A DNA stretch of 64,000 nucleotides from Macrostomum lignano (lineage: Eukaryota): NCBI GenBank assembly GCA_002269645.1, contig NIVC01000753.1:310001-374000 (forward strand), written 5' to 3'. The notes beneath the pieces were generated by a model. It ran no database searches and was not told the DNA's origin. It saw only the letters and a list, made by a program, of their open reading frames with translations. This document shows positions 33,001-58,649 of the stretch, piece after piece. The stretch's first letter is position 1. Every line of letters starts with the position of its first letter. Made by a program: the position numbers and the translations under genes.

Positions 33001-36000
33001 TGCGTCTCTCCCCACTGCGTCTCTCCCCACTGCCTCTCTCCCCACTGCGTCTCTCCTCACTACGTCTCTCCCTCCCAAAAAGTCAGTTAGAACCCCCGGC
33101 AGTCGCTCACCCAGGTCCTGCGCCCAAGTCTTGCCGTTAGAGAAGGCGGCCACAAAGCTGTAGCCCATGCGGACCTTCTTGGTGTCCGGCGGACAGTCCG
33201 GCGCGTTGTCGCTCATTGAGTGAAGAGTGAGCAGGGAGCCGCCCGGACTCATGGGGCCGCCTGGCCCCGGAATGCCTTTCTCGCCGCTTCTACCCTTGTG
33301 ACCAATAATTCCCTTGGGGCCCAACGAGCCTTTCTTGCCGCGGTCGCCGCGCGGCCCCCTGTCGCCTTTCGGCCCGACATTGCCTTTGGGACCGACGTCG
33401 CCCTGCGGTCCGGTGTCGCCTTTTTGGCCGCGCTTGCCCGGCTGGCCCGCTTGGCCCTTCTCGCCCGTGCCACCTCGGGTGCCTTTCTCGCCTTTGACGC
33501 CTTTGTCGCCTTTGACCTCTTCGCCTTTCTGGCCTAGAGTTCCATTCTCGCCTTTGCTGCCTTTGATGCCTGCGCGATATTTCGTGGGGAGGATGTGTAT
33601 TTAGTTAAGTTATTAACTGCTGGACTTCTGGTGAAATATTTTATTATGTTGGGTGTCCTTGGTGTTCTGGACTCTCACTACTATGGCTCGATAACAACTT
33701 CGATTATCTTTGTCAGAGAGCCAAATAACTGAGCCTTTGGATTCGAGTGTTGACTTACATACCGTTGTATTTAATGTTCACAATCGCGGTGATGTTATCT
33801 TACAGAGAATATAGTATAAAGGGAGCTGTTCCAGGTACGAAGCTTCACGTAACTTAACTTTGTTATTTGGTTCTATTCTTTGGGCGAACGGTTACTTCGA
33901 TCAGGAGGGGATCGGTTATCCTTTGAGGTTTAATGAATCAGCTTTGTCTATAAATATGTTCGAGTCAAAGATTAGCTAGGAGAGAAGGCGAAGGAGGGGT
34001 GAGCTTCATGCCTGGTTTAACGGAATGTTTATATAGCATTTTCAGTCTTTCGTCTTAAGAAATAATTTAGATGGTACATGGCTACTTCTCATTGGCTGAG
34101 GCTGGGGTTGCATCCTCAGCTTTTGCTTGTTGGTTGATTAGTTGATAATTATATTCCAAACTGGATGTGAACTTTCGGAGCCAAATATATATCACTTCAC
34201 TGGCTTGCGGTTTCGGCCAGTGATTTAAGGGGAGTGGGTAAGGCAATACGTGGCCACGTGGGTGATTGAGTTGGATAATATGCAGGTGCTTGAGTAGGTG
34301 AATATATGTGGATAAGGCAGGCGGATAAAGCTTGAGCAACTAAAACGTGTGACAGTTGAGCGCTCACCCTTAGGCCCGGTGTCTCCGGCAGTCCCGTTCT
34401 CCCCCTTTTCGCCGCGCAGCCCGTTCGGTCCAGTTTCGCCCAACTCGCCTTTGGGGCCGACTCTGCCCTGCGGGCCGCGCTCGCCTTTGGCGCCTCGACT
34501 GCCTGAAATTGATTGATTGATTACTGACAGCTTGTGGACTTAAAAGAAAAAAATACAAAATAGAATTGCGCCTGACCCTGCCGCAGGCACACCGTAGGGG
34601 TCGCAACCCTGACATTTCTACCGCAGCCCATAGCTTCTATCTAATTGGCTGTATGCTAACCACTGCCGGCTCAGCTTAACTTGGAAGAATGTGTACACTG
34701 AAATCGGACTCACCTGGTGGTCCTCCAATGCCCTTGTCGCCTGTTGGTCCTCGTCGACCTTTGTCTCCTTGTTGACCTTTTTCGCCTTTCAAACCGACGT
34801 CGCCTTTTACGCCGTCAATGCCGTGGCTTGCGTCGCGGCCTTTCTCGCCTTTCTGTCCGGCGTCGCCCTTCGGCCCGGTGTCGCCTTTGTCGCCCATGTC
34901 GCCTTTGCTTCCTTTGGTCCCGTTGGGGCCTCTGGGACCGATCTCGCCTGGGAGAGGAAAGGGAGCTGGTTGTTGGAGCGCGAGAGGTCCCAGTAAAGGA
35001 AAAAAGGAGGAATTGACTTGGCAACGGGATAATCGGGTGGGAAATGGGAGAAATTTTTGGGGGAATCGGAGGCTGCAATAGAAGTCGCGAATACAATATG
35101 GAATCCAATGGGGAATCCAACAGAGAATCCATTAAGGAATCCAATAGGGAATCCAATGGCACAATTTAAGGAAGAATCGGACGGTTTTCCAATGCTAATA
35201 GTAGTGTTGAAAATACGCTCGTAAAGAAAAGTTTACACAAATAATCTTAGCGCTCACCTTTCAGACCCTTCAAACCCGTATCGCCTTTCTCCCCTTTGGT
35301 GCCATTGCTTCCCTTCTCGCCTTCCGGTCCGATCACAGTTGAGCAATTCTGAGCAAATCCTTTGTCGCCCAAATCGCCTTTTGTTCCCTTAGGCCCTAGG
35401 TCGCCCTTGGTGCCGTTTCCGCCTTTGTCGCCTTTGAATCCGGTGTCGCCCTTCTCGCCGACGTCGCCTTTAACGCCTTTCTCGCCCTTTTGACCAGTTT
35501 CGCCTTTGTAACCCGTGCCGCCTTTGTCGCCTTTGCGACCCTAGGAATTGAGAACCGCAATTCACCCTTAAGCTTAGAAAGAGCATTAGCCAAGCAACAT
35601 GGCTTAGAGTTGAGTACACTGAACTTGGAATGACAGGACATGGACTGGAGCACAGGCACCAGATACAGACAACGAAACATAGACAATAGGCAGGCATAGA
35701 CACAGATCCAGACACAGCACCAGACACATCGCCAGACACAGGACCAGGCACAGCACCAGACACAGCAACCAGACACAGTAAGACACAGCACCAGACACAG
35801 TAAAACACAGCACCAGATACAGTAAGACACAGCACCAGATACAGTAAGACACAGCACCAGATACAGTAAGACACAGCACCAGATACAGTAAAACACAGCA
35901 ACAGATACAGTAAGACACAGCACCAGATACAGTAAGACACAGCACCAGACACAGTAAGACACAGCACCAGATACAGTAAAACACAGCAACAGATACAGTA

Positions 36001-56100: not shown

Positions 56101-58649
56101 CGGCAGCGACGGCAACGTCGGTCGGAAAGGCACGTTTGGCAGCCAAGGCGCTAAAGGTTTGAAAGGCCAGATTGGCGAGGCTAGCGAGCGCGGTCAGAAA
56201 GGCGTTAGCGGCGACAATGGATCGACAGGGTCAGTGGGCGACAAAGGCTTCACTGGAGACAGCGGAGACATCGGGGACAAGGGCGACCGCGGCCAGCTCG
56301 GTGACGTGAACACTGTGTACGTAAAAGGCGCCACCGGCAGCAAGGGCTCGGTCGGTGACAAGGGCGATTTGGGCGACCGGGGCCAGAAGGGTCGCGATGG
56401 CGACGTCGGGCTCAAAGGCGAAACTGGAACCGACGGGCAGAAAGGAGATAAAGGCGAGCTGGGCGACACTGGACCTAAAGGTGTCAAAGGCAAGGCCGGT
56501 GAAGATGCTTTGAAGGGTCAGGACGCTATCAAGGGCCGGCAAGGCGACAAGGGCCAGGCTGGAGAAAAGGGCAACGTAGGCCTGGAAGGCGACAAAGGCA
56601 TCACAGGCGTTGAAGGCTCGTCTGGGCCGCTGGGCAAGCAGGGTCGCAAGGGCGCGGTCGGTCCGGACGGTCGAGTTGGCGCGAAAGGCGAGCTGGGCGA
56701 ACGCGGAGCCAAAGGCGTCGCTGGGTTCAAAGGCGACAAGGGCAGATTGGGCTCACGCGGCCAGAGTGGCCAAGTCGGCGACCGGGGCAGCGACGGTGAC
56801 AAAGGTGAACGGGGCGACTCCGTGACCGGCAGCATCGGCCAGGTTGGCGAGGTTGGCGAGAAAGGCACCCCGGGAGCGCCGGGTCGAGAGGGTCGCGACG
56901 GCCTCGCCGGCGGGAGGGGTCCGCGAGGACCACCGGGGCCAAAAGGCGACCTGGGCGAGGCGGGGCCCATTGGCGACAAGGGCCCGCCGGGGCCGAAAGG
57001 CCAGCAGGGTGATCACGGCGACGGCGGCGACAACGGTTCCAAAGGCGAGCCGGGCAGCGACGGTGACCGCGGTCCGGAGGGTCGCAACCTGCGGGGCGAC
57101 ATGTTCGCGTTGCACAGTCAGCGGACCGACGTTCCCGGTTGTCCCAGCGGCACGCAGCGCCTTTGGGCCGGCTACTCGTTCATGTCGGTGTTCTCGAACT
57201 CGTACACCAAAGTCTACGACCTCGGCAGTCCCGGCTCCTGCCTTCGACGCTTCAACGTAATGCCATTCAGCCTGTGCGAGAACTCCAAGAACTGCCACAA
57301 CGCCCAGAGGAACAGCCTGTCCTACTGGCTGAGCACGGACGTCTCCGTTACCATGGAGATGGCAATGGACTTGGACACCTACAGGAACATGTCCCAGTAC
57401 ATCAGCCGTTGCGCCGTGTGCTATTCGCCCAGCAAGGTTAGTAGCAACTATTGTTTACTTTATTAGCATCTACGCACTGAGGCGATGTACATTGAGAAAA
57501 TATACGCTGTATTTAAATCAGCTTTAAGAAACCGAAAAAAGATCCATTCGTTACCACCACTCTCCATCTATTTGCAGGTGTACGCATTTCACAACTACAC
57601 CAATACTAGGCCGAATTGTCCCTCGGGATGGAGATCGCTCTGGGATGGTCACAGCCTCTTAACAGTGAGTATCTATTGGCATCAAACTGTCAATGACTAT
57701 ACTTATGCTTAATAAGCACACTCAGCCACCCACAAGCACACTCAGCCACCCACAAGCACACTCAGACATCCACAAGCACACTACTCAGCCATCCACAAGC
57801 ACACTCAGACATCCACAAGCACCATCAGACATCCACAAGCACCATCAGACATCCACAAGCACCATCAGACATCCACAAGCACCATCAGACATCCACAAGC
57901 ACACTCAGACATCCACAAGCACCATCAGACATCCACAAGCACACTCAGACATCCACAAGCACACTCAGACATCCACAAGCACCATCAGACATCCACAAGC
58001 ACCATCAGACATCCACAAGCACCATCAGACATCCACAAGCACCATCAGACATCCACAAGCACCATCAGACATCCACAAGCACCATCAGACATCCACAAGC
58101 ACACTCAGACATCCACAAGCACCATCAGACATCCACAAGCACACTCAGACATCCACAAGCACACTCAGACATCCACAAGCACCATCAGACATCCACAAGC
58201 ACCATCAGACATCCACAAGCACCATCAGACATCCACAAGCACCATCAGACATCCACAAGCACCATCAGACATCCACAAGCACCATCAGACATCCACAAGC
58301 ACCATCAGACATCCACAAGCACCATCAGACATCCACAAGCAGCAACCCGTCGCCCCCACCGCAGTTCGGCCGCCAAACCCCTGGAGATTCGGTGCAGCCC
58401 CTGTCCTCGCCAGGCAGCTGCCTAAGGTTCAAGAAGAACATGTTCATCGAATGCCGAGGCGAGGGCAGCTGCGGCTACTTCAAAGACTTTCACACCCTGT
58501 GGCTGCGCGCCACGGAGACAGAGGAACCCGTGCTGAAATCAGAGACCTTCACCTACGCGAGCGGCACTGGCCACATAGCCAGGTGCGTCGTCTGCACCAG
58601 GAACATTATCGAATGGGCCAAGTACATTAACGGTACCCTGACAGTTTGA
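47142..58649 (+). CDS. COL4A: Type IV collagen chain (alpha1-like by 7S CxCxGxKG, tentative), about 1769 aa, 15 exons
   Basis: Exons: 47142-47243, 47663-47710, 48280-48450, 48530-48682, 49619-49759, 49909-49986, 50088-50267, 50611-50826, 51518-51611, 51828-52420, 52552-52755, 53037-54413, 55856-57436, 57578-57664, 58365-58649. All GT-AG, consistent phases, total 5310 nt. Signal peptide ending [19 protein letters not shown], Gly-X-Y helix, NC1 with [33 protein letters not shown]. Confidence 0.96.
47790..48230. repeat. 43 bp minisatellite CGCTCCACACTTAGATAGCCAACTCTACAAACCCTTCCCCCAT
   Basis: About 10 units in intron 2 of the plus-strand collagen. Confidence 0.95.
48740..49570. repeat. 42 bp minisatellite CGCTCCGCACCCAGATAGCCAGCAGAGCAAACCCTTCCCCAT
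   Basis: About 20 units in intron 4; related to the 47790 array. Confidence 0.95.
50830..51310. repeat. 23 bp minisatellite with alternating variants (46-bp dimer), core GGGTTTG(T/C)T(T/G)GAATGGGG
   Basis: Tandem array in intron 8. Confidence 0.93.
57715..58340. repeat. 20 bp minisatellite CATCCACAAGCACCATCAGA
   Basis: About 30 units in the last intron of the plus-strand collagen. Confidence 0.97.

Follow-up and report, generated by a model that had tools for sequence, protein, structure and literature searches.

Sequon-crowded, Y-proline-poor collagen IV chains encoded by a head-to-head gene pair of the flatworm Macrostomum lignano

Introduction

The question raised by this locus is whether the triple helices of a flatworm collagen IV hold more N-glycosylation sequons than chance would place there and, if so, what these sequons might do. 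The locus lies in a 64,000-nucleotide stretch of Macrostomum lignano DNA (GenBank assembly GCA_002269645.1, contig NIVC01000753.1, positions 310,001 to 374,000 of the forward strand), here called the window, to which all coordinates refer. It comprises two collagen IV genes on opposite strands, the products of which are referred to as the plus chain and the minus chain. The basement membranes of animals are built on a scaffold of collagen IV, the chemistry of which is, to our knowledge, understood almost entirely from the hydroxyproline-rich proteins of vertebrates, flies and nematodes.

In the vertebrate 7S region the motif G-x-N-G-S/T-y-G has been shown by experiment to be glycosylated and is accommodated in the triple helix (PMC7619536). 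The central helix of the human chains has no known N-glycan site, and a 2025 review describes N-glycosylation within Gly-X-Y repeats as rare and the single 7S site as intriguing, with an undefined role (PMC7619536). Reviews of collagen IV modification and of collagen glycosylation place N-glycans only at the 7S site and in propeptides (PMC7619536; PMC11012932).

The original prediction, made from the letters of the sequence alone, was of a heavily N-glycosylated and charge-stabilized collagen poor in proline. We report that both chains carry in-helix sequons far in excess of the shuffled expectation, at mostly different positions, and that proline has been lost specifically at the Y position of the triplets. 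The protein family is known; its sequon-crowded, hydroxyproline-poor form is new, in a flatworm and in a placozoan. The literature searched gave no paper describing multi-site in-helix sequons in collagen IV and none linking Macrostomum, flatworm or Trichoplax collagen IV to N-glycosylation.

Materials and methods

Collagen exons were located by a six-frame scan for Gly-X-Y runs (minus strand, 44707 down to 33250; plus strand, 48280-57088). Gene models were built by dynamic programming as chains of open Gly-X-Y exons joined via GT/AG sites.

A perfect Gly-X-Y repeat admits a sequon only as Asn at Y followed by Ser or Thr at the next X. The null distribution was therefore obtained by shuffling the X-position residues among the triplets (20000 shuffles), preserving composition and position class.

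Three reference sets were used, one of them a group of single genomic loci from animals. A full-length panel was assembled by an NC1-alignment scan of metagenome and metatranscriptome contigs, which gave 80 loci and, after removal of redundancy, 26 chains. A fragment baseline consisted of 216 NC1-containing C-terminal collagen IV fragments from protein searches, with 7016 clean triplets; the matches in those searches reached at most ~1.75 times the query length, and a full-length collagen IV chain was not among them.

Results and discussion

Sequon excess in both chains

The collagenous domain contains 17 N-x-S/T sequons in the plus chain and 18 in the minus chain; the count made by eye had been at least 15 per chain. 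Eleven and 13 of them, respectively (24 in total), are in-helix heptads of the form G-x-N-G-S/T-y-G, and the eight heptads quoted in the original prediction were all located among the coordinates given in Table 2. The shuffles gave expectations of 1.4 +/- 1.1 (plus) and 1.6 +/- 1.2 (minus) in-helix sequons, and the observed count was reached in 0/20000 for each chain, so that the proposed check against shuffled controls bears out the noted sequon density. Asn at Y is followed by Ser or Thr in 11/16 cases in the plus chain (69%) and 13/18 in the minus chain (72%), whereas the same is true of 6% of the remaining Y residues (Fisher p = 2e-9 and 1e-11). Among the residues at X, Thr comes after Asn in 43% of cases and Ser in 22%, a bias towards Thr, and Pro follows the sequon Ser/Thr in neither chain.

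All 24 in-helix sequons lie within long uninterrupted Gly-X-Y reading frames, and on the strands opposite these intervals the motif is absent. Their Asn codons are AAC (13) and AAT (11), eight different codons are used for Ser/Thr and the flanking residues vary; repetition of a single DNA unit thus does not account for the sites. Global alignment of the paralogues brought only two sequon columns into coincidence. Enrichment of both chains at mostly different positions points to selection, which had been suggested from the recurrence in the two paralogues. The excess over chance and over other collagen IV chains, its independence in the two chains, the gene structure and the shift in composition are direct observations. 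The bias to Thr, the absence of a following Pro, the varied codons, the scarcity of shared columns and the sequons in interruptions argue for real acceptor sites that are maintained independently.

Not all sequons follow the helical pattern. Five others are present in the minus chain: NCT, NVT, NCS and NQS inside interruptions of the Gly-X-Y repeat and NGS (CRNGSKG) beside one. In the interruptions of this chain 5/7 Asn residues belong to sequons (shuffle p = 0.002). Six plus-chain sequons (N-A-T, N-A-S, N-R-T, N-D-T, N-Y-S and N-M-S) are outside the helix geometry. The exon 53037-54413 holds, as predicted, ten sequons, in the order NAT, NAS, NGT, NGT, NGS, NRT, NGT, NGT, NGS, NGT. Upstream of it, between 48280 and 52755, the plus chain has the 7S-type GDNGSRG together with NYS, NMS and NDT, with NYS and NMS within a long interruption that is conserved with the minus chain.

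Proline and charge

Triplet composition is compared with the 26-chain panel in Table 1. Proline is lost at Y, the position of hydroxylation, where Lys largely stands instead; Asp and Glu are raised at X and X-position proline is ordinary. The predicted scarcity of proline therefore holds for Y and fails for X (15-17%). Relative to other collagen IV chains, Lys at Y and Asp/Glu at X are roughly doubled, so that a charged composition, as predicted, is found in both chains. Non-random pairing of these charges is confined to one of them: K-G-[DE] occurs 82 times against 59 expected by shuffling in the minus chain (z = 4.7) and 41 times against 40 in the plus chain, and charge pairing as a feature of both chains was rejected on this ground, which leaves the predicted salt-bridge stabilization half supported as a non-random feature. 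Enrichment in RGD, which had been called frequent, was likewise rejected (z = 0.1 in the plus chain and -1.4 in the minus chain); the motif is at the level set by composition, inside the panel range, and carries no extra information.

Table 1. Triplet composition of the two M. lignano chains and of the full-length reference panel
Quantity	Plus chain	Minus chain	Panel median (range)
X-position Pro (%)	15.4	16.8	14.9 (10-26)
Y-position Pro (%)	9.6	7.8	34.6 (16.2-49.0)
Lys at Y (%)	27.5	35.7	15.4 (2.7-20.0)
Asp/Glu at X (%)	32.9	35.7	17.6 (6.7-28.4)
K-G-D/E per 100 triplets	9.4	17.9	8.8 (0-13.4)
RGD copies	12	8	3.5 (0-15)

Comparison with other collagens

In the 26 reference chains the total number of sequons is 1-5 (median 2) and that of in-helix sequons 1-4 (median 1), and M. 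lignano is well outside this panel. The suggested comparison with other collagen IV chains thus favours an unusually high sequon density, with Trichoplax alone comparable. A sequon at relative position 0.05-0.06 is present in 26/26 reference chains and, to judge from its position, would be the 7S site. A second, at relative position ~0.14, is common to many of them; judging from the plus chain of M. lignano, it is probably in the long interruption that follows 7S. The in-helix sequons nearest 7S in M. lignano are GDNGSRG at 0.066 (plus) and GRNGSRG at 0.089 (minus), the most 5' exons of both genes being approximate; both are close to a Cys-containing triplet (GCSG, GCEG). The plus chain keeps probable counterparts of both reference sites, at 0.066 and at 0.13-0.14, and ~15 sites per chain are therefore additions.

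The 216 fragments contain nine in-helix sequons, or 0.13 per 100 triplets, against 2.5-2.8 for the window chains, and Ser/Thr follows Asn at Y in 5.9% of cases, about the baseline. For single loci the density per 100 triplets was 0 in Saccoglossus, Apostichopus, Elysia and one Logan contig, 0.22 in a Pro-rich ENA contig (one site, of the 7S type GCNGT), 0.57 in Nesidiocoris, 0.7 and 1.2 in two other ENA animal contigs and 2.35 in Trichoplax adhaerens. Only the last is comparable among the collagen IV compared, and the trait is not unique to M. lignano. In the Trichoplax gene (TRIADDRAFT_30529, DS985254.1, 3910-10813) 8/12 Asn residues at Y are followed by Ser/Thr (Fisher p = 3e-6) and Pro makes up only 8.8% of the X and Y positions, both figures being taken from genomic Gly-X-Y runs. 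It differs from the M. lignano genes in belonging to a placozoan, far from flatworms, and in its lower content of Lys, Asp and Glu (26% against 35-40%).

Crowding of in-helix sequons is not confined to collagen IV, as seen from a 951-residue collagen-like protein of the coral Porites evermanni (P0289) in which no NC1 was detected. Here 12/15 Y-position Asn residues precede Ser/Thr (7.9 sequons per 100 triplets), but the protein is made up of short collagen blocks in repetition, followed by other modules at the C-terminus, and its model may have merged tandem genes. Other collagen IV database matches to the window chains are 36-48% identical, M. lignano entries aside. Among full-coverage matches, the minus chain is matched best by a Logan transcript of 1090 residues (P0267), which has an unusual architecture of von Willebrand A domains, collagen repeats and a collagen IV NC1.

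The annelid cuticle collagens of Riftia and the earthworm also have a hydroxyproline-poor helix; there O-linked galactose on Y-position Thr is thought to offset the missing hydroxyproline, and a stabilization has been measured. The modification predicted for M. lignano differs from it, being a large N-glycan on Y-position Asn in place of O-galactose on Thr.

With the vertebrate COL4A1/COL4A2 pair the M. lignano genes share the head-to-head arrangement, a helix of ~1470 residues, ~20-25 interruptions, two C4 repeats, 12 conserved NC1 cysteines (minus chain) and, in the plus chain, a sequon probably near 7S with further ones in the long interruption behind it; they differ from collagen IV of this type in the number of sequons (17-18 against 1-5) and in Y-position Pro (8-10% against 16-49%). 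The glycosylated Asn of vertebrate 7S lies in an identical motif, in which Asn occupies Y and Ser or Thr the X that follows. A single in-helix site is confirmed for vertebrate collagen IV (PMC7619536), in agreement with the premise of the original prediction; it occurs once per chain, in 7S only, with a proposed role in 7S assembly, whereas in M. lignano 11-13 such motifs extend along the whole helix.

Identity of the gene pair

The two genes are divergent (head-to-head), with a gap of ~2.4 kb between the first mapped exons, and head-to-head pairing of collagen IV genes has been reported to be conserved across metazoans (PMC12141075). The collagenous domain comprises 1477 residues in the plus chain and 1468 in the minus chain (1422-1512 in the reference chains, n = 26) and is broken by 25 and 20 non-Gly-X-Y segments, respectively. 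Both chains run into an NC1 domain spread across three exons. Two stretches of Pfam C4 (PF01413) are recognized in each chain (E = 1.9e-67 for minus, 8e-60 for plus), and this tandem bears out the collagen IV identity proposed originally. In an alignment of 25 sequences, 12 cysteines of the minus-chain NC1 (C17, C50, C62, C68, C105, C108, C127, C157, C169, C176, C219 and C222) occupy invariant columns. The locus is an alpha1/alpha2-type collagen IV gene pair of standard architecture.

Of the residue pair that forms the sulfilimine cross-link, the minus chain (last exon) keeps Met and has Ser in the Lys column (alignment column 228). This Lys is present in 24/24 other aligned NC1 domains, the plus chain being ambiguous by eye. 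The pair is not universal in collagen IV, and loss of the Lys does not exclude the minus chain from the family.

The plus-chain NC1 (57089-58649) bears three sequons of its own, RNMSQ, HNYTN and INGTL, the last of these C-terminal; in mammals the NC1 domains have been described as lacking glycans (PMC7619536).

The feature has probably gone unnoticed because the public models are frameshifted. An exhaustive search with the minus-chain NC1 gave one close match, the UniProt entry A0A1I8FP35 (M. lignano), which is 93% identical to the minus chain over the matched NC1 stretch and represents this very protein with many frameshifts in its reading. The minus-chain exons are also covered by the M. lignano model P0121, which is riddled with frameshifts and retains only 86 clean Gly-X-Y triplets, and a further M. 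lignano model, P0304, likewise full of frameshifts, corresponds to the C-terminus of the plus chain and is fused to the downstream retroelement open reading frame.

Proposed role and alternative explanations

We consider it fairly probable that this collagen IV pair lost Y-position proline and gained ~15 sequons per chain, which are N-glycosylated and form a steric coat, occupancy and function being predicted ones. Most of the sequons are expected to be glycosylated. The Asn residues would be modified by oligosaccharyltransferase in the endoplasmic reticulum, on unfolded chains, before the helix zips from the NC1 end; since the chains would be unfolded until then, the sites should be accessible to the enzyme. 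Being attached at Y, the glycans would point outward. On a 2:1 heterotrimer, the ratio being assumed by reference to other animals, there would be as many as ~52 N-glycans, spaced at about 8 nm along a helix of ~420 nm. Their most likely role would be that of a hydrated coat keeping a hydroxyproline-poor, highly charged helix soluble; they may also engage lectin chaperones during slow folding and restrict lateral association in the network. Selection seems to bear more on how many sites there are than on where exactly they lie, which would explain why positions are not conserved between the chains.

Several points weigh against this steric-coat proposal. The reviews assign no function even to the 7S glycan (PMC7619536; PMC11012932), and stabilization or spacing of a collagen helix by N-glycans is a predicted role only. 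The 26-chain panel (among L012-L090) is taxonomically anonymous and has no identified flatworm. Exon borders are predicted and some of them, like the 5' ends of the two genes, are approximate. The inverse relation of in-helix sequon density to Y-position Pro (Spearman -0.84 for 11 loci, -0.72 for these without M. lignano and -0.44 for 57 loci) counts in favour of the proposal, but the correlations ignore phylogeny and are inflated by near-duplicate sequences. Four proline-poor collagen IV fragments (P0146, P0147, P0271 and P0267) have few or no sequons, so that low proline does not always bring sequons. It seems to us rather doubtful that in-helix crowding is a recurrent answer to hydroxyproline loss in collagen IV, reached independently in at least the flatworm and the placozoan, with N-glycans on Y-position Asn partly standing in for hydroxyproline in hydration, stability or spacing and with an inverse rule between Y-position Pro and sequons.

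The excess of N-G-S/T might also express a packing preference of the helix without any sugar, the Asn at Y forming a hydrogen bond with the next-X Ser/Thr of a neighbouring chain and so helping a proline-poor helix. The geometry, from Y to the next X, is that of the axial contact of K-G-E/D salt bridges, and K-G-D/E is itself enriched in the minus chain; moreover, the excess was found in the two collagen IV sets that are poorest in proline, those of M. lignano and Trichoplax. A packing rule cannot explain the sequons in the non-helical interruptions of the minus chain, however, and the six plus-chain sequons are placed where helix geometry does not apply. The bias to Thr over Ser matches the preference of oligosaccharyltransferase, and no preference for Ser/Thr after Asn is seen in the 7016 triplets of other collagen IV. 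We regard packing alone as distinctly unlikely. It is also unlikely, in our estimate, that the sequons are used only inside the cell, recruiting calnexin and calreticulin for quality control of a slow-folding chain in the endoplasmic reticulum with nothing structural to do in the basement membrane. On the C-propeptides of fibrillar procollagens, N-glycans do serve mainly in folding and quality control when proteostasis is under stress (PMC11012932; PMC7619536), and positions that are not conserved between chains fit a role dependent on number. Glycans on the helix, unlike those on propeptides, would nevertheless remain on the mature protein, and ~52 per protomer would affect its packing. Intracellular and structural roles cannot be separated by the present sequence data.

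Asn-Gly is the most deamidation-prone dipeptide, and any Asn at Y in a helix precedes Gly. Glycans could thus shield these residues from succinimide formation in a long-lived matrix protein, and indeed ~70% of the Y-position Asn residues are in sequons, the other Asn being mostly at X without a following Gly. Yet in other collagen IV chains Asn occupies Y in 0.6-9.3% of triplets (3.9-4.5% here) with almost none in sequons; protection is not generally required, and we hold this explanation to be very improbable. That gene modelling, composition or recent internal duplication produced the pattern is scarcely credible. Exon borders are predicted, and a false 33-nt exon and the poorer acceptor 53088 did arise in modelling, but the sites lie in long open frames with no motif opposite them, the shuffles hold composition and position class, and flanks and codons vary by site. 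An artefact is excluded for practical purposes.

A natural collagen IV with 11-13 in-helix sites to a chain, in an animal amenable to RNA interference and transgenesis, would test the effect of N-glycans on a triple helix. The M. lignano chains would also show how a helix with <10% Y-position Pro stays folded.

Gene models and surroundings

Coordinates are collected in Table 2. The hydrophobic-core ATG/donor scan for the signal-peptide exon gave only weak candidates for the minus gene. Three modelling candidates were rejected. A 33-nt plus-strand exon (51270-51302) is inside a minisatellite; acceptor 53088 was set aside in favour of 53037, the better acceptor for the large exon; and the 63-nt segment 50133-50195 was not accepted as an intron, as a comparable interruption of 21 residues stands at the corresponding point of the minus chain and the segment is also present in model P0121.

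Table 2. Features of the window
Feature	Position	Strand	Basis or remark
Minus-chain collagenous exons, 5' part	44573-44707, 43675-43719, 43421-43483, 42606-42827, 42158-42361, 41824-41877	-	Splice-aware Gly-X-Y model
Minus-chain collagenous exons, middle	41630-41737, 40904-41335, 40369-40728, 39890-39971, 39644-39759, 39096-39560	-	Same model
Minus-chain collagenous exons, 3' part	37484-38341, 36657-36923, 35258-35540, 34714-34947, 34368-34523, 33111-33569	-	Same model; in 33111-33569 helix ends near 33249 and NC1 begins
Minus-chain in-helix sequons	42666, 42272, 39522, 39183, 38321, 38240, 37871, 36822, 35403, 35292, 34910, 34384, 33532	-	Low window coordinate of each
Minus-chain NC1 exons	31815 (or 31833)-32129, 30078-30328	-	Pfam C4 x2; includes stop codon
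Intergenic region	44708-47141		Between divergent genes; presumed shared promoter and first exon(s) of minus gene
21-bp minisatellite	45157-45620		Between the two genes
Plus-chain exon 1	47142-47243	+	Start codon and signal peptide, then GTGAGT donor; hydrophobic-core ATG/donor scan; more short exons possible before 48280
Plus-chain 7S end and N-terminal half	48280-48450, 48530-48682, 49625-49759, 49909-49971	+	Splice-aware Gly-X-Y model
Plus-chain N-terminal half, further exons	50088-50267, 50611-50826, 51518-51611, 51828-52420, 52552-52755	+	Same model
Plus-chain 7S-type sequon GDNGSRG	48647-48667	+	
Plus-chain large collagenous exon	53037-54413	+	Acceptor ...ccccttccag, then GGAGAC
In-helix heptad starts in this exon	53355, 53445, 53541, 53943, 54033, 54228, 54351	+	
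Plus-chain last collagenous exon	55856-57436	+	Helix end near 57088, then first NC1 subdomain; Pfam C4
In-helix sequon starts in this exon	56093, 56210, 57026	+	
Plus-chain NC1 exons	57578-57664 (or -57688), 58365-58649	+	Junctions by best alignment to spider NC1; includes stop codon
Minisatellite arrays	35710-36617, 38432-39056, 48748-49567, 57714-58341, 59800-60649		Introns and intergenic stretches
Ribosomal protein S5-type gene	5695-6162	+	Possibly mitochondrial form
LINE-type retrotransposon	13731-16531	-	~65% G+C
Grainyhead/CP2-family transcription factor gene	20054-25020	+	CP2 and GRHL1_C domains
505-residue open reading frame	61388-62905	+	RVT_1, E = 4e-4

Minisatellites occupy many introns and intergenic stretches, among them the intron between the plus-chain NC1 exons (20-bp unit). 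Across the window they have periods of 15-49 bp, up to ~60 copies and 84-98% match, and they give rise to many long spurious open reading frames. The long interspersed nuclear element (LINE)-type retrotransposon comprises an Exo_endo_phos reading frame followed by one with RVT_1 (E = 1e-31). The reverse-transcriptase match of the 505-residue reading frame is weak; since its C-terminal part (TVYIGET…R…H) resembles a GIY-YIG nuclease by eye, the frame may represent a retroelement of the Penelope-like kind.

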